NCBI GenBank assembly: GCA_904063045.1
Contig: CAJFCJ010000011.1
Location: 558,001 to 622,000 of the forward strand
DNA from: Dimorphilus gyrociliatus
Taxonomy: Eukaryota; Animalia; Annelida
Direction of reading: 5' to 3'
DNA: 64,000 bases
Positions 3 through 63,404 of the stretch are shown piece after piece. A program made the translations under genes and the position numbers. Every line of letters begins with the position of its first letter. The first letter of the stretch is position 1. The notes under the pieces were generated by a model. That model ran no database searches, was not told where the DNA came from, and worked only from the letters and a program-made list of their open reading frames with translations.

Positions 3-3000
3 ATTCTTCCTACTGCTCAACGATTGTTAGACGAATTACTCTCCTGTCAAAATACAGCTATTAATACTGTTAGAGGGGCCCCGGATCCAACAGCTGGACC
101 TTCTGCAGCGGAACATACGACCTGGTGCCTGGATGAGAACACCTTGTATGATAATATTAGAAAGACTTTAGGAAAATTTTGTGTAGCCTCTCCAGTGGTA
201 TTTAGTGATGTTAACTACTTGTCCAGTTCCGCTCCCCCAGCAGCAACAGAATGGCAAAGTTTACTTCGTCCACTTCGAGGACGAGAACCGGAAGGCATGT
301 GGAACTTGCTGTCCATTATTAGGGAAATGTACAAAAGGAATGATAATAATGCTGTTCCTTTGTTGGAGATTGTTACAGAAGCGGTTCTTAAAACCGACCA
401 ACTTCTCATATGGTGGTTTACTACCAAAGTTTCGTCCAGCTATTGTGCTCAAGGGGTAACCAACACTAGCAATGGCCGAAATGGAGGCTCTAGCCCTAAT
501 AGCCCATATGCAGGATCGTCATTATGTGATGAAGTTGTGCAGTTATGGCGAATAGCTGCTCTTAAGCCAGGACTGGATGCGAACCACCGTCGTGAATTAG
601 CAACCCAACTTCGCTCGTGGCATATGTCTTGCATAGAAATAGTTAAAAAGGGAAAGACATCACCTTCTGGCAGCATTAGAAAAGCTGATATAGAATTATT
701 TCCAGGTTTCAAACCAGCTATAGAAGCAACTCAGCTAGATTGGAAAAACTTTGTGTTACCAGGATCAAATCAGGTTGCTTCTTGCACCAGACCATGGCGG
801 CTAAGGAAGAGAGAATCCCACAGTCCTATGCAGAAGGTGAGACATAAATCTTTGGCTGATTCCGCTAGCTCTAGCTCCGAAGGATTTTGCGACAATGCCT
901 TGCCCAATTTGGATTCTGATGATGATGATTTAGACAGGATTTACGTTTATGATCCTCACTTGCTGCGTCATAAAATGGCTGCTGCAGAAAATGAAAGTCG
1001 CAAAGATGACACGAATTATTTTGCTGGAATTAGGAAAATTGATAGTGAACAAGATATTCTCTATGCCAGAGCTGAGGCTCTGTATGCTCATGGCTTCTCT
1101 TCGGAGGCTTGTACCGTTGCAAGGCAATTGGCCGAGAGTATGTTAGCTGATACACCGAATACCCAGGATATTCAAGAAGAAGCAAAGAAAAAACGATTAG
1201 TCAACCAGGCTGCAACGTTTAACATGTGCTCATTTTCGACAACAACTCTAGCAAAAGCATGGTTCTTATGCAGTGTTCTGGCAGAGGATGTACATAGCTA
1301 TCATCTATGTTTTGATTTAGGTCTATTTGCCTTGGAGATGCCCCGTTCTCCGGGATGTAACAAGGCTTTGGAAGTAAAGTTGGCTCACCAGGAAGCCGAA
1401 TTAGCTAGTTTGTTAAAAAAGATTCCCTTACAAGCATCTGAACATCAGAAGATTCGACAAAGAGCTGAACAGCTAAGGTCAGGAAAACTAAAGTCAAGAG
1501 GGGAGTCAATGCTCCCATTATCATTAGCTGCTTTTGTCTTTGATTCTCTTTGCCTTTCAAAAACGGCATCTGCTTGCTCTCGATCTAAAGAGGACGAAGA
1601 ATTAGGGTTTGATGCGGCAGTTGCTGCTCTTGGATTAAAAGCTAACGTCAGCGAAGCGGAACACCCACTCCTTTGTGAAGGTACAAGAAGACAGAGAGGA
1701 GATTTAGCAGTAACCATGCTATTACACTACAAGGATGATCAATCAAAGTTAGACCGAATTTTGGAAAGGCTGCTAGACAGAGAAGTACATCCGGCCTTTA
1801 AAGTACCTTCTTTTTCTGCTTACACATCTATGGGAACGAAAACTTTCAATCCTTCAGCATTTTCTGTTTCTGTGCAACAACAGCAACAATATAAATCCTT
1901 GGCTGCTACTAGAGAAGAAAAAGTTGAAGATTATTTAGAAAGAAGACTAAGTGAGCTTTCTACAACTGAGGATGAAGAGCAAGACAGTAAGGAGAGATGG
2001 GTGGCATTACGATGTACATCTTTTAAAACGGGAACAAGAGCCCGTTCGGTTGGTATGGCTGCTATCGACAGCAGTGCACCGGAGACAACATCAAGCGATA
2101 ACAGTCCTACTATCGTAAGGCGGCAACCATGGCCAAAGAGTGGAGGACCTCCTTCTGATAGTGGATCTAGTGGAAGCGATGGGTCTTCTAAGCCAATAAC
2201 CGGAAGAGAGAGTCCCACTCAGCAAAGAGTTTTGGGAAATAGACATAATATACCTATAGCTATCTCTCCTGGATCTAAGTTGGGAGTGACCTCCCGCTTC
2301 GGCAAGTTGAAGAGAATTACACCGACTATTCCTAATCAACCGTCGGAAGCAGGAGCTCATTTTATGTTTGAATTGGCAAAGAATGTATTGAACAAGGCGG
2401 GCGGAAGTAGTTCTACTTCTTTGTTTACTCCTCAGCCAGCATCTCAAAATGCACACGCAGCTTCCGGCCCTCATAGAAATTTGCACATCTGCTCTTTTTT
2501 AATTGGCCTGTATGCCCTAGGGATTCATAATTGTGTAACCCCAAATTGGTTATCACGAACTTATTCGTCCCACGTATCGTGGATTACAGGACAGGCAATT
2601 GAAATAGGAGCCGTGGCTATAAATATTCTGATAGGAACCTGGGAAAAGCATCTTACACCTCCTGAAGTAGCAACTCTGGCTGATAGAGCAAGTAGAGGAA
2701 GGGATCCAGCTACTGTTAGAGTGGCTGCCGAGCTCGCTCTCTCTTGTTTGCCACACGCACATGCCTTAAATCCAAGTGAAATACAAAGGGCCCTGGTCCA
2801 ATGTAAAGAGCAATCTGTTAGTATGATCGAAGCGGCTTGTCAAGCAGTTGAAAGCGCAGCTAAGGAAGGAGGAGTCTACCCGGAAGTGTTATTTGATGTT
2901 GCTAAACGATGGTACGAACTCTATGAGGACACTACCTGTCAGGGCACCCCTCCTCTGGTTTCGGCACCACCCCCAGCTCAGCCACCACCACCTCCTCCGC

Positions 3001-3938
3001 AACCTGCTCCTGCTCATCAGGCACCTGCGGAATTGGAAGACCCTAATTTGGTTCCTATACACTTACCCTTTTCTACTAACGTTGTAGTTGGTCAAGTAGC
3101 GCCTCCTCCACTTGCGTATGCGAATCCAAACAATCAACAAACAGCTTATGTCTCTTATGGTTATGGGCCACCAGCTCCTCAAGGTCCTACAGCTTACGTC
3201 CCAGCTGCCTATCATCACCATCAATACACGGCTCCCACGTTTTATCTTCCTCCGCCCGCTTTCATACCTTCTCAAAGACCTGCCGTAATTCTTCCACCGA
3301 TCGAACACATTCAACAAGCCATTACTCCAGAATCGGCAGCCCCGCCGGCTCTTCCAGCAATATCACCAACCAACTCACCATCGGGAATTGGATACTATAT
3401 GTCGGCATATCGTGTGGGAATGTTAGCTTTGGAAACTCTATCGCGTCGCGTGCATGACGATCGCCCTCAGGTAAAATACGCAAGAAATCCAAGCTATGGC
3501 GAAGATGTTAAGTGGTTACTACAAATTTCTCTAAGAATGGGGACGTCCTATGTCCAACAATACTGTGGATCCGTTGTTAACGCCGTGCTCTCACCATTTG
3601 TTTTATACGACGTCGCAACAGAAGCAGCTCGTTATTTAGCCAGAGGTAGTCCAGCTCATTTTCAGCAACAGTTACGTTCACCCATGCTGAATGCCGTTCT
3701 AAATAAATGTCAACAAATGTTTATTCAGTCTACTCATCATAAGTTGCATTACCTTCAACCAGCAGATCACGAGGAGTTGATTGGCATTGTCTGCGCTGCT
3801 CAGCACGCTTTTTTGCTCAGTCCCGGCGGTTTAGTCCAATTCCAGGAGATGTTACAGTCTATGCGTAGGGTGAAATCATGTAAGAAGGAGCTTTGGCAAA
3901 GAATTGTGACATCTTTGAACGGTTCTTCAGCTATATAG
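3..3938 (+). CDS. ZSWIM8: ZSWIM8 (Cullin-RING substrate adaptor), 5'-truncated at the window edge; visible part is one uninterrupted exon
   Basis: Frame is open from base 3 (ILPTAQRLLDELLS) to TAG at 3938. Recognised ZSWIM8 segments: GAPDPTAGPS, LLRPLRGREPEGMWNLLSI, KLAHQE, LFDVAKRWYELY, AYRVGMLALETL, YARNPSYGEDVKWLL. The ORF-track start at 24 is a TTG, not the real start. Confidence 0.95.
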   Translation: MLPTAQRLLDELLSCQNTAINTVRGAPDPTAGPSAAEHTTWCLDENTLYDNIRKTLGKFCVASPVVFSDVNYLSSSAPPAATEWQSLLRPLRGREPEGMWNLLSIIREMYKRNDNNAVPLLEIVTEAVLKTDQLLIWWFTTKVSSSYCAQGVTNTSNGRNGGSSPNSPYAGSSLCDEVVQLWRIAALKPGLDANHRRELATQLRSWHMSCIEIVKKGKTSPSGSIRKADIELFPGFKPAIEATQLDWKNFVLPGSNQVASCTRPWRLRKRESHSPMQKVRHKSLADSASSSSEGFCDNALPNLDSDDDDLDRIYVYDPHLLRHKMAAAENESRKDDTNYFAGIRKIDSEQDILYARAEALYAHGFSSEACTVARQLAESMLADTPNTQDIQEEAKKKRLVNQAATFNMCSFSTTTLAKAWFLCSVLAEDVHSYHLCFDLGLFALEMPRSPGCNKALEVKLAHQEAELASLLKKIPLQASEHQKIRQRAEQLRSGKLKSRGESMLPLSLAAFVFDSLCLSKTASACSRSKEDEELGFDAAVAALGLKANVSEAEHPLLCEGTRRQRGDLAVTMLLHYKDDQSKLDRILERLLDREVHPAFKVPSFSAYTSMGTKTFNPSAFSVSVQQQQQYKSLAATREEKVEDYLERRLSELSTTEDEEQDSKERWVALRCTSFKTGTRARSVGMAAIDSSAPETTSSDNSPTIVRRQPWPKSGGPPSDSGSSGSDGSSKPITGRESPTQQRVLGNRHNIPIAISPGSKLGVTSRFGKLKRITPTIPNQPSEAGAHFMFELAKNVLNKAGGSSSTSLFTPQPASQNAHAASGPHRNLHICSFLIGLYALGIHNCVTPNWLSRTYSSHVSWITGQAIEIGAVAINILIGTWEKHLTPPEVATLADRASRGRDPATVRVAAELALSCLPHAHALNPSEIQRALVQCKEQSVSMIEAACQAVESAAKEGGVYPEVLFDVAKRWYELYEDTTCQGTPPLVSAPPPAQPPPPPPQPAPAHQAPAELEDPNLVPIHLPFSTNVVVGQVAPPPLAYANPNNQQTAYVSYGYGPPAPQGPTAYVPAAYHHHQYTAPTFYLPPPAFIPSQRPAVILPPIEHIQQAITPESAAPPALPAISPTNSPSGIGYYMSAYRVGMLALETLSRRVHDDRPQVKYARNPSYGEDVKWLLQISLRMGTSYVQQYCGSVVNAVLSPFVLYDVATEAARYLARGSPAHFQQQLRSPMLNAVLNKCQQMFIQSTHHKLHYLQPADHEELIGIVCAAQHAFLLSPGGLVQFQEMLQSMRRVKSCKKELWQRIVTSLNGSSAI

Positions 3939-29574: not shown

Positions 29575-29907
29575 CTTTTTAACAATAATGGCTTTTAAGT
29601 CATTTTTTCTATAAAAATCTCAAAAGATAAAAACATTAAAGGTGGAAAATAGAAAGTCTACTTTCTGCTAAAATTAGTGGGACAGCTGATTTAGGCGTCA
29701 AAGAATTGATCAAATGACAAACCTTTTTCCAAGTAGACGTAAGATAAAGCTTTTTATTTATTTATTGGGCGTTTCTGGGCAGTACATAATATCATTAACT
29801 ATACTATCAAACTACGATCGCAAAATGACAGACTACATTTCTTTGCATGCTTCACACATCTAAAGTTTTTGCTTTGCGATAAAGACTCTTTGCATACACA
29901 AAGTTGG

Positions 29908-30664
29908 TTATCTGATTACTTGCTTAGTAACATCAACATACGTGGCTCCATCTGGTATTTTACAGTCATATTCCAGGAAATTGGCTAAGTCACCCCATTT
30001 ACAATGCGTCTTTTCCTCTTCTTTATATAGTTTGCACTGTAGTGTTGTCTTCAATTCAACAATGACGCCCGAGACTTTCAGCTGTAGAATAATAATAAAA
30101 AAATTGTAATATGCCTTCAGACGACTAATTAGTACTCTAATCAATATAGAGAAAAGTTTTATAAGGAATTCACGGCCCACAGTGCAAATCAATATCTATT
30201 TTCCTTGGGAAATGTGTGTCTCATGAGAAATAAGTGTAAAGAAAATTTACAATAATATTTAATATACTAACCCTTATTATAATGATGATCTGCTGTCTAT
30301 TTCCTTTTTTATTGGGTGAGAAACTGGTGCTTGTCCATTCACATGTATATAGGCTTTCTCCAGCCTTTCCGCTCTTCCCTTCGTTGAGAGAAATGCTACT
30401 TCCTTGTATAGCTAGATCTCTATTGTGAAGGACGAGAAGACATTAAACGACCAAGTGATTTTGTAATAGAAATGAATAGAAAAAAACAAACGCTTACAAT
30501 ACTTCAATTTCCTGTGTTAAACGTAATTCCAACAGATAAGGTGTATCGACGTTCAGTTTTAAGGTTTTTTCACTGTCAAATCGACCTCCATCTATTTTAA
30601 AACGAACTGGTTCATTGTCATCCTTCCTCTTCAACCCCAACTGCAATTTAAAGGTGGTCGCCAT
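29908..30664 (-). CDS. CNRIP1: CB1 cannabinoid receptor-interacting protein 1 orthologue, 3 exons
   Basis: MATTFKLQLGLKRKDDNEPVRFKIDGGRFDSEKTLKL; YTCEWTSTSFSPNKKGNRQQI; LQCKLYKEEEKTHCKWGDLANFLEYDCK. These match the recalled CRIP1a pattern (PVF.KVDG.RF...RT.KL; HC.WG..F..IEY.C). Confidence 0.88.
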
Positions 30665-30758
30665 AAGTAACGACAGCCAGCAGCTAAGGCTAATTTTTCC
30701 AAATATCGATCCCCCCACTAGCTACTGTAGGAAACGATGAAACCGCCTACTGATTTCA

Positions 30759-30769
30759 CCGCCATCTTG
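30759..30769 (-). promoter_or_regulatory. YY1 consensus in the CNRIP1 / isonitrile synthase bidirectional promoter
   Basis: CCGCCATCTTG is CAAGATGGCGG on the minus strand, inside the 185-bp gap between the two ATGs. Confidence 0.55.
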
Positions 30770-30849
30770 TGGAAGCTTGAATAGACCTAATCATTTAAAT
30801 GTCACACTTTCATTGTCACAGTTTCTTATACCAGTTTTATTAGTCAGGT

Positions 30850-32471
30850 ATGACAGCTTCAGCGTTGCAATTGTTGAAAACGAATGAAATATTCTCGAAG
30901 GAGATTGAACCATTAGTAAACTCTAGTAATTTTCTTATTTATATGTTTATTAATTCTACCTAATTGTAGAAAATATTACACGAGAAAACCGCAGTTTTAT
31001 GCACCGATACAATCAAGAGACGATTATTTGACACAGAAGCATCGGTGAAAAATCTATTTCAATGTGCTGAGAGAGTTCTAGGAAGTAATTGGGAAGAGGA
31101 ATTTCGAAGTAACAACTCGCTTAGATGATTATTGATCATTAAATAAAAAAAATGAAGCTATTTTTTTTTATAAAGAATGGCAGTCCGGAATAGAGACAGA
31201 CGAGGAGAAAATAACAATTCTTGAAGCATTAAAGAGTATAATTCGGTATACGATAATTTTTTATGCTAATGGGGGCAATTTTTATCTATCCAATCATCAT
31301 TCAATGTTTCCAATTTCTTTCAACGATAAAGTCAATAAACTAACTTCTCTTATCAATGCTGGTATTCCTTCTTATATCCCGTCCGTTTGGTTATCAATTG
31401 TTCAGCATGTTATGAGCTGTTTCGAAAAGATTCGCCTCCGTCCCCAAAATGATAAATGGCTAATTTCTGGCAATTCAGAGAAATTTCGTCGAAAAGTTCT
31501 TGGGTATGTGGTAGGTGGTGCTCCAATTCCATTCGTTCTACCCGCTTTCCCAATGAAGAGTAAGAATAGGATAAAGAAGACAATTGGTCCCCTCCCCGAT
31601 ATGGCAGAATGGATTTCTTTGAAGCATTTGGCAAATTTTTGTAGGGAAATCCGTAAAATTTATGCACCTGGAGTAAAGATACTTATTTTTGGAGATGGAC
31701 GATTATATGGTAAAATATTAAAGTATGATGATAGCGAAATAACCGAATATGAAAGAGTTTTCAAGGATATGCTATCGAGATTACCTGAAGAAATTCACGA
31801 TCAACTCCTTTATGCCGGTATCGATGACTACTTTGAACGAGACATGGGATATGATAAAATTCGATCATACGTATACTCTCTTTATGATGTTACAATGGAA
31901 GAAGTTGATAATGCAATTAGGGTACATACTGCATTTTAGTATGTATTATATTTGTCTATACTAATCAGCACTTCAACATACTTTTAGACTAATGAAAATA
32001 TAAATAACGTCTACAAGGGATTTGCACGCTATCTCGACGAGGACCTTGAAGGTGATATACCAAAGGATATTTCTAGAACAAAGCGCAAACAAATAACAAA
32101 GGATTTTGCAAGAAAATTGTTGAGAGGTAATATGGTTTATAGTTTGGTGATAAAGGATATTTTTCCTCATCACCTTCGTCTTTCCATACATCCTCATAAC
32201 AATGAGGATAAGGTTGGGGTTTCCCTGTTGGAGAATCAAAGATTTTCTGCTGGAACACCTGTAAGTTGATTACTTTTACGTTTCATTTCAATATAACAAA
32301 AAAACATTATGTTTTCTTCAGTGGCATCGGGTAGCCGCCAAGAAAAAAGATGGACATTGGTATTTCATGAGACGAATTGATGCTGAGGCAATGAATTATA
32401 AATTAAAAGGGCAGTTTAACGGCGAAGGAACAGCCAACAGAGAAAATTGGCCTCATTATGTTGAAGAGTAA
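30850..32471 (+). CDS. Isonitrile (isocyanide) synthase, PvcA/Dit1/IsnA family (DIT1_PvcA domain), 6 exons, about 425 aa
   Basis: Exons 30850-30915, 30970-31108, 31176-31235, 31332-31921, 31988-32260 and 32322-32471 join in frame through five GT-AG introns (1278 nt in total). Family motifs occur in order: PIPFVLPAFPMKS (31538-31561 for LPAFPMKS), LPDMAE, IYAPG.KILIFGDGRLY, HLRLSIHPH (RLSIHPH 32177-32197) and GTP|WH. Confidence 0.9.
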
Positions 32472-32652
32472 AAAGTTTAAAGTACAAAATTTACAAATGA
32501 ATCGAAATATATTTTGACTATTTAAAAATGGAAGAATAAATGATACTTTGAAAATATTTTGTCTTTGTTCTTATTGCATAATAATTTATTCAATTATTAA
32601 AATATTATATTTGTATTCAAAGTGGACGGAACGATTGAATGTGATAAACGAA

Positions 32653-35137
32653 TTATTTTTGTCTTACTGCCTTAATGAACATTGACTTCGTCTGTTCTAT
32701 GACTTGCTGATAGATTTTCAAATCTTCTTCTTTTGCTGATATAGATCTATCTAAAGCCATTTTCAGCATATCAATTTCATCACTTTTAAATAGAATATCA
32801 TTTTCTAAATCATCAATTTTTGTTGCTAATAAATCTGTTTCTGTTTCCTCGAGTTTTCTTCCTTCGCTTTTTAGTCTACCAACCTGTTTCTCAAGGATAG
32901 CAGTCTTTTTTCTTTCTGACTTTAAGTGTTGTTCACTTTGTAGTCTCTTTTCTTCACTATCTTGAACCCTTTTTTGCATAACTCCTATAAGTTCGACTAA
33001 TTTGTCACGTTCAACTTGAGCTGTTTGACTAGGGCGAAAAAACACAATCAAATAATTTAACTTCAAAAAAACTTATTAAATAATCTGTTACCTTAGTACT
33101 TTGTAGTGTTCTATGTCTGCCCTCGGCGTTTCGGCTAATCGCGAAGACGATCTTGAAGATAATCTTGAGCTATTTCTTCTGGCAGAACCCATTTCTTCAG
33201 AATCGATCGTTACGACCGCGATATTATGTTCAATTCTGCATTGTGACAATCTAGAGGTCTTTTGAGTAAAGTGAGTTTTGGATTGAGAAGTTTTTCTTTT
33301 CAAACTATCAAACTCGTTCTCAAGCTCTATTAAATGATCATCGCGTTCACGAATAGTATTTTCCAACTGTTTTATTCTATTAAGATATTGTTCCGATTGC
33401 ACTTTCAAATCAGACATATTTTTATTAAATTTTTCGCTAGAGTCAGATTTATTCTTAGTGGCAGACACCAAACCTTTCTGTAACTGTTCTATTTGTTTCT
33501 AAAATATTAAGAAAGTATCAATTATAGAATACGAATGACTATGTATCATTCAAAGGTTTATTACCATCAATGCTTGTATTAGCTCATTATCGTGGTTATT
33601 CTTAGTTAGTAACGTTTGAGTTTGATTTTTCAGCGATTTAATTTCGTTGGAAAGAACTTTGTTTCTGAAGATATATTTAAATTAGTTCTTCAAAATCGAA
33701 ATAAACATTTGTCTATTCTGTTACCTGGCCTTTGATGCGTCTAATTTTCCTTTAAGATCATCTCTTTCCTTCTCTAATTCTGAAATTGTTTCTCCCATCT
33801 TTTGTAAGTTTTCTTTTCTATCTTTTTCCAATTTCCTAATTTGATCTTTATGTTGGATATCCAAGGTGGCTGTCCGTCGACCAGACACAGCACTTCCAGT
33901 ACCAAAATCCATTTCGGAGCCTTCTAACTGTGATTTTAATTCACTTACTTTTTGCTGTAAACTTAAAATTTGTTGAGATCTTCCTCTCCAAGTACTATCC
34001 GACTTTAACACAGCTTGAACGCTGGTGTTTTCACCGATTTCGTTAGAAAGTGCTTTTTGAGCCAGTTTTAGTTCCTGTTTTAAACTTGAATTTTGATTCC
34101 GATATTCAGCCATTTTCAGTTCGCTCTGTCTCAATTTTTCAGAGGTTGCTTTTAATTCTAGTTGTAATTTCTCTTCATCCAAGATTTCTCTAGGTTTTTC
34201 TGATCCTCCATTCTGTAGCTGTTAATATTTTATAAGATAGAGGTAAAAATAAGAGGATTGACGATATTACTTACTTGATTGCTCAACTCGTAGATTCTAC
34301 GTGTGGACAGTCGATTCTTGTTCCTTTCACTTTCTAATTCGGCATTTAATTCTCGTACTTTTTTGGATAATTCTACGATCTTCGTTGACGCTGCATCAGA
34401 AGTTGATCCCGCTGAAAATCTGTTGCCGTAAAATAATATATTACATTTGAAAATTAATTTTAAAGAAGAACACACACGTTTCTAATAGAATCTTATCTTT
34501 CTCCCATTTTTTCCTGAGTAATTTAGCTTCTACTTCCTTCTCTTTAACAAGTTGGAGTAAACGACCATTTTCATCTTCCAGGGATCTTATCCTATTCGTA
34601 TATTCCTCTTTAGCACTTTGAAATTCGTTTTTCAGTTGATCTTGCTGCATCGTATCCGCTCCCTAGTTTGAAAAATATATTTATTGTAAAATAAAATTCA
34701 CAATCTCTGTTTTGAGCATATTTTAAAGCGACCTCTCAATGTTTGAAATAAATACCACTTTACCCAATATTAAATATTTACTTAATTATTAATAACATGA
34801 ACCTTTGCGATATAAGTCAAAACGGTTGAAATGTAAATAGAAAATATAAAACTGGGATTGATCCACTGTCATATTAGATTGTTGATTAGATAATATAAGT
34901 GAGAAAATACTAGGAGAATAAGTCAAAGCTGAGTTTCATTTCAATTTCATAACCAGAAAGTTGAACTATACTCACCATTAATCCTAAATCATCACTTAGA
35001 GTAAGAGACTCTTCATTATCCCCATTCTGTTGTTTAGATTTCGCAGCTTGCTGTTGTTTAATTCGAACAAATTTCTTTTTTTGTTTTTCTTGGATCGCTT
35101 CAAATTGTAACCTTAGATCGTCTTGTGTCGAAGTCAT
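32653..35137 (-). CDS. CCDC13: Coiled-coil domain-containing protein 13 (centriolar satellite), multi-exon
   Basis: MTSTQDDLRLQFEAIQEKQ; KIVELSKKVRELNAELESER; YRNQNSSLKQELKLAQKAL..EIGE; WRGRSQQILSLQQKV; EEDLKIYQQVIEQTK.MF.KA. Confidence 0.85.
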
Positions 35138-59870: not shown

Positions 59871-62800
59871 ATGACAGACTGTCCCTGCAAAGAAGACTTA
59901 TCCAAGAGAACAAAGAACAAATGGAAAATTTTCTCGAAAAGAAAACCCTTCACGAATGAAAAAAAAGATAAATGCAGCGTTTGCACAAATATGTTCAATG
60001 CTTGTTCGATATGCCAAACACCAGTGGTACAGTTTCCTATTGTTTTCCAGCCGACAGAAATACGAGGAGGTAGTTCAGTTAATAGCTTCAAAGCTATTCT
60101 AGTACCAAATGTCGAAACTTCTTCAAAGACACTTTTCCAAATCAATTTAGGACAGTTTATTTTTGATTATCATACTGTAGAGATGGTTGAATTGAATTAC
60201 GAAAATGAAAATGCTAGAGTTATCCTATATTGTACAATAGGGTTACAATCCGGTAAGACAAATTTTAATGGTTATGCTGTTGAAAAAGATCAAAAGTTAA
60301 CCCTAATCTGTACCTGGCGATCAAAGGAAGATGCTGGAAAATCTTTTAAAAGACAACTAAACATTAAGCCTTTTGTAGAGGCTAAAACAGATCAATATGT
60401 TGAAGATGATGATGCCTCATTTCATATACAACTTAGACCAACTGGTTTCATAGAAGACGATGAAAATATATATCAAGTTGATGATAAAGAGAGGAGACCT
60501 ATATCCGTCTCAATTGAAATGGACTCAGATGCTAAAATATTTGACGAGGAACTATCAATAGTTCATCACAACATGAGTCGGCATGAACCAGGCGTTTGGA
60601 GCTGGAAAAGGTTTCATAGAAAGACGTCTAATTCCTTAGATGATAAACCAATCGTTTGTTCCCAATTTCAATATCAAGGTTTAGAAACGTTTCGTCGACC
60701 AGAAACATTCATTCGCATTGTTAGCGATACTATCGATGAAAAACTAATAAGGGCGGCCGTTACCGATAATCCCATTCTTTTAGCCGTTATAAAGGCGTTC
60801 GAAGTAAGGTTATCAGAAGCAACTGTAATAAATATTGATGAAATTATTAAAAGACAATTTGAAGCCGTGCTTTTTAAACCAAATTCATTTAAAGAAATTG
60901 TTTATAATATAGACATTGAAACACCTTCAAGGGAGCGTCAAAAGTATGTTACCATTGTTTCGGAGCAAACGAGTGGAATTATTAACACGGAAACCGTTCC
61001 ACTAACTTATATTGTTAAAGAAGATTCCTCCTCCTTTGAAGATGGTCTTCAAGTTGTCAACAAATCAGAGGATTCTCTAGACGATAATGAAATATATATT
61101 ATGGTTTCAGAAATTGGTTTTACTGAAAACAAAGTTCTTTTGAAGATACTGAATCCTTTTAAATACTTCAAGTAGGTTGCATTTTGTAAATACTCTATTA
61201 ATTTTTTATTAATTAAAGATTATAATTTTTTATTCAATTAAGAAAAAACTTAAAGGAGTGTTTACCTACTCATGCTTCCAATTTTATAAGCGTCCTCTCC
61301 TGGGTACTACAGAATTACTGGATATCAGGCGAAAGAGAGGATGGTTTATGCAATGATAATCGAACAGCATCATTTTGCTGGAGACGTACATCAACTCCAA
61401 TGAATAAGCATATGTGGAACGAAAGAAATGCCAGATCAGATGGAATAGACTTGGGAGCTATATGGAGGTCTGATTTGAAAAATGATATTGCTATGGACAC
61501 GGAAAATCAGTCCAGAGGAGAAAATGAATTTTGGACAGAAGACTTTGGTATTGTCGAGTTAAGGAATAGTGCATTTACTTCGGAAGAAGTTAAAACTTTA
61601 CCTACTTCTATTAAGGAAGAGACTTTTCCAGTTGTTGTTGACCATGAATCTCTACGTGCCGAATCAGTGTCACTTGAGGATGCTGTCTCGACTAATTTGA
61701 ATAATGACCATGTTGTTTATGACGAACGGGAACAAGAAATTGACGAGAGGTTTGATGTAAAGGTCTCTCCGGAGTCTAATTTCGAAGAAGATTTGATTCT
61801 TGTCAATGATTTGGAGCCATCACTCATAGAATCTTTAGATGATAAAAACGATTCAAAGATTCCAACGATCAAAATTAAAGAGGAACTTGGAGGGACATAC
61901 TCTATCTTGTCCGAAACTGACCAGGAGAATAAATTGGTAATTGAAAATGAAAAGAATACATCTATCATTGAAGGGAGTAATTCTCTTAAACAATCGTTTA
62001 ATATTGATGAAAGTGCAAATAGCATTCAACAATCGAAGGAGAAAGAGGCAATTAACATTCGTGAGGAAAATTTGATAATTAATGAAAACCCAGCAGAAAA
62101 TAACGATAAAGACGATAATGCTATGATCCAAGACAATATAGATGATAAGACATCTCCGAAAAGTCCCTTAGCCCTTGAAATAAAAAAAGAGAAAAAAAAC
62201 AAGCGTAAATTTTGGAAACGAAATCATAAGCCTTCAAACATAGAGGATAAATCTTCCAGAGAAGACTCAAAAAGACGATCTAAAAAACGAAATTTACTTA
62301 TCAAATGTTTAATTGGAGGGGGAACAAATTCTTCAATTGATCTCAGTCGACAAGAAGTCAAAGTTAATGAAGAAAAAAAACAATCAGTTATTGAACTTAT
62401 TGATAAGATAAGATCAGAGGAAAATATCTTGAAACCCCAGTCCAAAAAGAGTAATATATCTATGAACTCGTCAAAAACTTCTATTAAATCAAAGAGATCA
62501 CAAGCTCTACTGTCTAACAGACAGAGATCTATGGGAAGTATAAACTTGCTTTCACAGAAGGAAAGAGAAGAGAAGGAGCAGGAGGATAAAAAAAAAGATG
62601 AAGAAGAAGAGAAGAAAAAAGTCTCAAAATCTAATAAGAAAAAATTTTTTAATTTCAAACCAAGAAAAATTATTACAAAGCATCCTAAGAAGTCAGATTT
62701 AAAAAAACGTGCTAGTGTTCGCCTATCGGAAGGATCTCGAACAGTAAGGAAAGCAAGAGAATGTAATGAAACTGAGGAAGCGCTCTTCACTATGATCTCA

Positions 62801-63404
62801 CAGGGAAGTCAAACTGCTCAGAAAAATCCTCATAGTGAAATTTGTGAAAAAATAAGTCCATTTTCCGTTAATGAACCTCAATCCCTCAGGGAAGATATTG
62901 TTAACGAAATAGAACGTCGTATTATTCAAGAAGCTACTTTACATAAATACCTTGCCCTATGGTAAAAACTTAATATTTTCTTATTATTTTACCGTATAAT
63001 GATTTACTACCCAAAAAAACATAGGAGAAACGAAGAGGAAACTAACAAAAGGATGGATCTTTTAAGTGAAATGCTTAAAAGAATGGAAGAAATAGAATCG
63101 GAAATGATGAGAACTAGTTTACCTCCCGCTCAGGCTAAAAAGACAGATCTTACAATGACTGTATTCGAAAATTCTCCACTACAAGGTTTGCTAAATATTT
63201 TTCGATACTTTTTGTTATTAATTTAAACATTTCTCATTATATATAGATTTATACAAAGAATTTATAAATGATAGATCAAAGCTTAAAGCGAAATATGACA
63301 TGATAACTAACAATGTGCAAAAACAAGCCGTACTTGAAAGCGTGGATGAGATTATTAAAAGTTATACTTTATTTAAGAAGGCATTGGAAGCAAAGATTGT
63401 ATAA
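59871..63404 (+). CDS. Orphan large protein (about 1,100 aa), probably one 4-exon gene joining the 434-aa and 521-aa ORFs
   Basis: Donor AA|GTAGG at 61171/61172 and acceptor TTATAAG|C at 61290/61291 join in frame (61292 to 61400 is 108 nt with no stop). Further introns at 62962-63024 and about 63188-63247; stop at 63404. Confidence 0.55.

Follow-up and report, generated by a model that had tools for sequence, protein, structure and literature searches.

Why does an annelid carry an intact gene of the DIT1_PvcA enzyme family, and does the gene truly belong to the animal? The question is raised by positions 30850–32471 of a window of 64,000 nucleotides from Dimorphilus gyrociliatus (contig CAJFCJ010000011.1 of assembly GCA_904063045.1, positions 558,001 to 622,000 of the forward strand; all coordinates below are those of the window). 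A first-pass annotation had read the locus as an isonitrile synthase gene domesticated in the animal after horizontal gene transfer. In this work, the isocyanide synthase (ICS)-family gene proved to be a genuine single-copy nuclear gene of the worm. An old horizontal acquisition, leaving a domesticated gene with a complete PvcA-type domain for isonitrile or N-formyl chemistry, is overall the best explanation and one that we hold with somewhat better than even confidence, because membership of the family comes together with introns, an embedded location, expression and the lack of close named animal relatives.

The gene lies on the + strand and is intact from an ATG at 30850 to a stop codon at 32469–32471, with five exons encoding a product of 457 amino acids (aa) (Table 1). 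An intact spliced open reading frame (ORF) had been proposed and was found, whereas the proposed six exons and length of about 425 aa had to be revised to five exons with four introns and, by translation of the confirmed exons, to 457 aa. The exon structure was established with contigs from public runs aligned to positions 29800–33600, which comprised four RNA-type runs (X1 from 2017 and X3–X5 from 2020) and one DNA run (X2). X1 comes from a separate study and is filed under a different species label, and X2 is possibly the assembly's own source. The four GT..AG joints were present with zero mismatches in spliced contigs of the four RNA-type runs, as a check on spliced RNA had called for; all four were seen in X1, and among the 2020 runs X3 showed introns 2, 3 and 4, X4 showed introns 1, 3 and 4, and X5 showed introns 3 and 4. 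The ICS-family gene is transcribed in all four RNA-type data sets, at an assembler depth of 15–26 versus 58–250 for its neighbours, which is a rough guide only. A sixth exon, created by an intron near 31250, was ruled out, as the contigs of the four runs continue across 31176–31921 without a joint.

From Met112 onward, the product is identical to DgyrCDS8449 of D. gyrociliatus (CAD5119865.1, UniRef A0A7I8VVW4), which is annotated on a 1.3-Mb scaffold as a protein of 346 aa starting at Met112 (31304). Exons 1 and 2 join exon 3 in frame, and all 111 codons upstream of Met112 are open, an event with a probability of about 6e-4 given how often stop codons occur locally. The public model is thus probably truncated at its 5' end. 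The corrected gene model therefore has 457 aa instead of 346 aa.

The assignment to the PvcA/Dit1 type was examined with the Pfam profile PF05141 (DIT1_PvcA), the search that the first-pass annotation had proposed. Exon 3 matched profile positions 4–112 with 107.5 bits (E 1.1e-30) and exon 4 matched positions 153–244 of 273 with 70 bits (E 3.1e-19), both far beyond chance and above the curated cut-off of 26.4 bits. The five motifs LPAFPMKS, PDMAE, GDGRLY, RLSIHPH and TPWH follow one another in the order claimed for them. When the PDB was searched by sequence, the best matches were PvcA (3E59, E 1.5e-18) and the L-Tyr/L-Trp isonitrile synthase 9DH4/9DHM. An AlphaFold2 model of residues 112–457, computed from a 72-sequence alignment, was of high confidence (mean predicted local distance difference test score 93, predicted template modelling score 0.90). 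Foldseek placed this model closest to PIsnA (9dhm/9dh4) and PvcA (3e59) with an E-value of 2e-21 and template modelling (TM) scores of 0.77–0.88; the top eight PDB matches were without exception chains of PIsnA or PvcA (E 2e-21 to 6e-20, TM 0.74–0.88), and the next matches, to tyrosyl-tRNA synthetases and cyclodipeptide synthases, appeared only at E>3e-3. The worm protein retains every column that is invariant among 72 sequences of bacterial, fungal, protist or environmental origin (12/12; P194, K196, D210, E213, G234, D242, R381, S383, H385, K392, P408 and W409 in the 457-aa numbering), the family-invariant signatures being FP.KS, PD..E, DGR, RLSIH, K and TPWH, and it also retains 35 of the 40 columns conserved at ≥85%. 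Sequence profile and structural model thus make a solid case that the gene belongs to the DIT1_PvcA family and that its product is predicted to adopt the PvcA fold.

The complete catalytic domain of the PvcA/IsnA/Dit1 type occupies approximately residues 112–457, and residues 1 to about 111 are N-terminal to the part that superposes on PvcA. For this extension we obtained no Pfam family match and no detectable homologue. A GAF-like nature of the extension, suggested by the architecture of related proteins described below, was considered and rejected, since a profile of their N-termini gave E 0.13 with a negative score and Pfam was blank. The protein is probably cytosolic because its sequence has no evident N-terminal signal peptide.

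An enzyme gene of an otherwise microbial family could have reached the assembly as contaminant DNA or by a misjoin, and the genome project did remove proteobacterial contigs from one assembly described in its methods (PMC7854359). We therefore looked at how the gene is tied to its surroundings. Its start codon lies only 185 bp from that of CNRIP1, on the 1.3-Mb scaffold, and the two genes are arranged head-to-head (ATG 30664 to ATG 30850), a spacing that suggests a shared bidirectional promoter. CNRIP1 had been named as a neighbour from the sequence and was identified upstream on the - strand by its Pfam matches (PF15043, E 1e-12 and 3.5e-12). One contig of the independent 2017 transcriptome (X1) bridges the 5' ends of both genes, running from CNRIP1 exons with CT..AC joints into exons of the ICS-family gene, and a separately assembled DNA contig of 7,038 nt (X2) is colinear with the assembly over 29800–33600 (3.8 kb), so the locus is continuous. 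The four introns are of host size (54–67 nt, in line with a genome median of 66 bp; PMC7854359) and AT-rich (GC 0.20–0.27). The GC content at third codon positions is 0.315, inside the host range of 0.22–0.39, and the relative synonymous codon usage correlates with that of pooled host ORFs at 0.82, compared with 0.27–0.89 for host-gene controls. These observations effectively refute contamination or misassembly, to which we assign a negligible probability. Codon usage and intron sizes being host-like, the gene is fully ameliorated and not a recent insertion.

Table 1. Positions of the ICS-family gene, its motifs and the adjoining genes in the window
Feature	Position	Strand	Details
Exon 1	30850..30915	+	22 codons; first ATG after an in-frame stop
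Intron 1	30916..30969	+	54 nt, GT..AG, GC 0.20; joint 30915/30970 in runs X1 and X4
Exon 2	30970..31108	+	139 nt; ends in phase 1
Intron 2	31109..31175	+	67 nt, GT..AG; joint 31108/31176 in X1 and X3
Exon 3	31176..31921	+	746 nt; last part of the unique N-terminal extension, then the first half of the PF05141 domain; LPAFPMKS, PDMAE, GDGRLY
Intron 3	31922..31987	+	66 nt, GT..AG, phase 0; joint 31921/31988 in X1, X3, X4 and X5
Exon 4	31988..32260	+	91 codons; second half of the PF05141 domain, RLSIHPH; last residues ..TP
Intron 4	32261..32321	+	61 nt, GT..AG, phase 0; interrupts the invariant TP/WH; joint 32260/32322 in X1, X3, X4 and X5
Exon 5	32322..32471	+	49 codons and stop; begins WH, ends WPHYVEE, resembling the C-terminal LPYY.E of the long-form clade
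LPAFPMKS	31538-31561	+	motif
PDMAE	31595-31609	+	motif
GDGRLY	31691-31708	+	motif
RLSIHPH	32177-32197	+	motif
TPWH	32255-32327	+	motif; intron between P and W
CNRIP1 orthologue	29800..30664	-	introns 30082-30271 and 30420-30497; Pfam PF15043, E 1e-12 and 3.5e-12; CT..AC joints in four runs
Downstream convergent coiled-coil gene, 3' part	32627..33600	-	spliced contigs with CT..AC joints; generic coiled-coil Pfam matches only; CCDC13 a tentative label

The remainder of the window is made up of ordinary animal genes, including ZSWIM8, UTP15, RPC5, a DHHC palmitoyltransferase, a GH47 mannosidase and a prenyltransferase. ZSWIM8 is a single uninterrupted ORF of 1304 aa (24-3938) with TPR and C-terminal domains, and the GC content of its region is 0.43-0.47 versus approximately 0.27-0.39 in the rest of the window. 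Two long + strand ORFs at 59871-62965, of 434 and 521 aa, match no Pfam family at E<=0.001.

Given that the gene is the worm's own, we asked where it came from. When 1.84 billion cluster representatives were scanned exhaustively with HMMER, 1,230 matches were returned. Of these, only the gene's own protein reached E<=1e-30, and the best of the others was 40% identical along exon 3. In 5.8 billion proteins searched by word index, no match lay between 33% and 100% identity, and named animal proteins were absent. The named matches of a second search belong to Actinomycetota, Bacteroidota, Myxococcota, Pseudomonadota and Ascomycota. Among the approximately 15 billion proteins searched in total, no relative exceeded 40% identity. 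No named animal homologue was found in these collections, from which the worm's own 457-aa transcript product is absent, so that their transcriptome coverage is incomplete, and the searches did not reach other dinophilids. The lack of close relatives in named animal proteomes agrees with the earlier statement that the family stands outside the standard animal gene set. The highest pairwise identities, 34–35%, are to the short forms P0018 and P0010 of about 305 aa.

In maximum-likelihood trees, the worm protein falls inside a clade of long-form proteins of 420–694 aa from environmental or eukaryote-like sequences. Support for the clade by the Shimodaira–Hasegawa-like approximate likelihood ratio test was 98 in a 118-row tree and 92 in a 138-row tree, and was 99/92 in a careful 72-row tree, in which the named bacteria (100/99) and the named fungi (100/100) form separate groups and P0019 is the sister of the worm protein (95/73). 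A profile built from a 14-sequence alignment of the clade gave 5 matches, scored only among the 8000 candidates sharing most words.

The gene contexts of the clade members look eukaryotic from their sequences. The 37.5-kb metagenome contig that carries P0019 also contains RhoGAP, RRM, protein-kinase and ARMET fragments, and P0032 (L003:137-2107) is a transcript coding for an ICS-RRM fusion, the same C-terminal RRM_1 domain being fused to PF05141 in P0061. P0022 combines an N-terminal GAF domain (Pfam, E 3e-5) with PF05141, and among AlphaFold-DB clusters the worm model is matched best by A0A816XMB0, a protein of 500 aa named 'GAF domain-containing protein'. P0065 and P0175 are found on GC-rich contigs with type III polyketide synthase, major facilitator superfamily (MFS) and WD40/BRE1-like neighbours and with no Shine-Dalgarno motif upstream of the gene starts. 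P0133 (L014:1843-13105, on a 16-kb contig from SRR13325274) is an intronless 420-aa PF05141 gene flanked by an intronless rhodopsin-family 7tm_1 G-protein-coupled receptor (GPCR) gene (Pfam E 2.9e-41) and a PDZ exon (E 3.9e-9), and judging from these neighbours L014 is probably a second animal genome carrying another gene of this clade. The worm gene and P0133 are not sisters; P0133 sits in a 100/99 subclade that includes the GC-rich sequences of P0065 and P0175.

Two contigs deserve mention in their own right. On an ENA groundwater metagenome contig (Hain_H41; L008:1921-8846), a type III polyketide synthase, two MFS transporters and a 582-aa PF05141 protein are encoded on the same strand; this GC-rich contig has no Shine-Dalgarno motif upstream of the gene starts, and the array is a candidate isonitrile gene cluster of a eukaryote-like microbe. 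The short form P0014 (L012:6001-6927, on a 95-kb contig of JGI 3300009373) is surrounded by genes of archaeal type (RLI/ABCE1, DNA primase small subunit and NFACT_N), and because of this the family seems to be present in archaea too.

These results only partly agree with the first-pass proposal of a domesticated HGT from a microbe. The family, the spliceosomal introns, the host-embedded location and the expression all stand, as does the lack of close relatives in named animal proteomes. The donor is less settled, since the best tree places the worm protein outside the named bacterial and fungal clades and among sequences of eukaryotic context while statistical tests keep bacteria and fungi open, and the animal-like context of P0133 calls into question whether the worm gene is unique among animals. 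A foreign origin, whatever the donor, is likely in our view, and the donor was probably a microbial eukaryote with a long-form enzyme. Long ago, the gene would have been transferred horizontally into the lineage, most likely from a microbial eukaryote with an N-terminally extended version of the family, after which it would have gained its introns and the bidirectional promoter arrangement with CNRIP1.

Several results weigh against a domesticated enzyme gene of this origin. The worm branch measures 1.08 substitutions per site and the branch of its sister P0019 is also long, so the pairing of the two may come from long-branch attraction. Approximately unbiased (AU) tests do not reject trees in which the worm protein is constrained to a position next to the bacterial (p 0.07) or the fungal (p 0.11) clade, so the placement is a best estimate and not proven. 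Members of the nearest clade carry no species labels, their eukaryotic nature being read from gene contexts, and the worm's own N-terminal extension does not resemble the GAF-like ones of the clade. The searches gave no orthologue with which to gauge purifying selection. Five well-conserved positions are changed, including SDGR to GDGR and a 93%-conserved Asp to Lys; this Asp position is Ser in the clade members P0061 and P0032. The case for catalysis is made entirely by the conserved residues and the fold. No PvcB/IsnB-type dioxygenase was found in the window by tblastn with nine ICS-dioxygenase fusions, of which only the ICS part matched (31475-32260), and this search did not cover a Dit2-type P450.

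Three other accounts have to be weighed against the domesticated foreign gene. The long-form gene may instead be ancient in eukaryotes and have been inherited vertically, kept here and in a few other animals and lost nearly everywhere else. The nearest clade appears eukaryotic throughout, one of its members lies beside a 7tm_1 GPCR gene and a PDZ exon, the worm gene is deep in the clade on a long branch, and its composition is fully host-like, all of which fit vertical descent. However, such descent needs very many independent losses, because no named animal, choanoflagellate or other opisthokont is among the matches from approximately 15 billion proteins except for fungi, which form a separate clade; moreover, P0133 is not sister to the worm gene but nested (100/99) with GC-rich sequences of microbial-eukaryotic-looking neighbourhoods. 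We regard vertical inheritance as unlikely. The worm gene could also derive directly from a bacterium or archaeon and have since diverged fast, gained introns and acquired its N-terminal extension. Against this stands the best tree, which sets the worm protein apart from the named bacteria and joins it at 99/92 to the eukaryotic environmental clade, with which it also has in common the long-form architecture and a C-terminal ..P.Y.E ending. That P0018 and P0010, with the top pairwise identities, are of prokaryote-like length, that the related short form P0014 is on an archaeal-type contig and that the AU test is compatible with a place beside the bacteria (p 0.07) speak for such a donor, and yet we consider this route improbable.

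The remaining account concerns function rather than origin, namely that the gene is transcribed but its product is no longer an isonitrile synthase, being a pseudo-enzyme or having another reaction or substrate. The five changed positions with the Asp to Lys replacement, the long branch, the lack of a partner enzyme nearby and an assembler depth below that of the neighbours (15–26 versus 58–250) would fit such a loss, and a member of the family, yeast Dit1, was reported not to be an isocyanide synthase (PMC7345447). On the other hand, the worm protein retains all 12 invariant residues together with the four signature motifs, its fold prediction is of high confidence, and 457 codons are open, including the 111 upstream of Met112 that would be open by chance only at about 6e-4. 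A loss of isonitrile synthase activity is thus rather unlikely in our judgment. Between these accounts, the domesticated gene with a complete PvcA-type domain remains the explanation that we favour.

The invariant residues, the confidently modelled PvcA fold and the long open frame argue for an active enzyme, from which we infer production of an isocyanide or of N-formyl-tyrosine. By analogy with characterized members of the family, the α-amino group of an amino acid, Tyr or Trp, would condense with the C2 carbonyl of ribulose-5-phosphate, and the adduct would fragment. The resulting α-isocyano acid would be used as such or hydrated to an N-formyl amino acid, as proposed for yeast Dit1. Because no tailoring partner is adjacent to the gene, the product would probably be used directly or processed by unlinked host enzymes. 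In this way the animal itself may make isocyanides or N-formyl amino acids.

Comparison with known systems defines what is particular to the worm gene. With bacterial PvcA of P. aeruginosa (3E59) and PIsnA (9DH4/9DHM), the protein shares the Pfam family, the fold (E 2e-21, TM 0.77-0.88), the signature motifs and the invariant residues, but it is only 26–28% identical to them and has about 110 extra N-terminal residues, and its gene lies in an animal chromosome with four spliceosomal introns and no adjacent PvcB/IsnB-type iron/2-oxoglutarate-dependent dioxygenase. Dit1 of Saccharomyces cerevisiae, which belongs to the spore-wall N-formyl-tyrosine pathway, is likewise a stand-alone eukaryotic PF05141 protein with an N-terminal extension; Dit1 is cytosolic, as the worm protein probably is, and by analogy the worm enzyme may supply an N-formyl amino acid to an extracellular layer that is cross-linked (PMC7345447). 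The worm gene nevertheless lies outside the named fungal ICS clade (100/100), in trees in which no fungal Dit1-type sequence was confirmed. The fungal ICS-dioxygenase and ICS-nonribosomal peptide synthetase proteins XanB and CrmA have the catalytic ICS domain and a eukaryotic host in common with the worm gene, but they are multidomain proteins inside biosynthetic gene clusters (PMC5974471), whereas the worm protein has a single domain with an extension and is flanked by housekeeping-type animal genes. The long-form eukaryotic clade (P0019, P0133, P0008, P0067, P0022, P0032 and others) is nearest in the tree (99/92) and resembles the worm protein in its long N-terminal extensions, similar C-terminus and eukaryote-like contexts; identity to the worm protein is 28–33%, the clade genes are called as intronless single ORFs, and the worm extension is not detectably GAF-like.

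Besides bacteria and fungi, surveys have recorded the family in ten oomycetes, one amoebozoan and one moss; 'metazoans' are named a single time, as outliers and with no further detail (PMC5974471). Descriptions of the ICS route that depends on ribulose-5-phosphate are confined to bacteria and fungi (10.1101/2023.04.17.537281; PMC5974471), and the isonitriles of animals such as sponges and nudibranchs have been attributed to inorganic cyanide, with the enzymes unknown (PMC9992776). In the literature that we searched, no animal-encoded ICS was described and the PF05141/ICS family was not linked to HGT into animals, rotifers or annelids. Domestication of foreign-type metabolic genes in animals is itself known already, and the gene described here is a divergent PF05141 member of that sort. 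It provides a clean example of a foreign-type enzyme gene with acquired host introns and a shared promoter region, and its relatives bring to light a poorly sampled eukaryotic branch of PF05141 with GAF and RRM fusions. A bolder reading, in which the worm encodes a catalytically active isonitrile synthase and the long-form branch made its way into animal genomes on at least two occasions (here and in L014), is one that we put forward tentatively and hold to be more doubtful than probable. If it is true, the product might serve metal binding, antimicrobial defence or cross-linking of the egg cocoon, egg capsule or cuticle, roles that are speculation at present. As the annelid can be cultured in the laboratory and its genome is compact, this intact and expressed ICS-family gene offers a direct experimental handle on whether animals carry out this chemistry.

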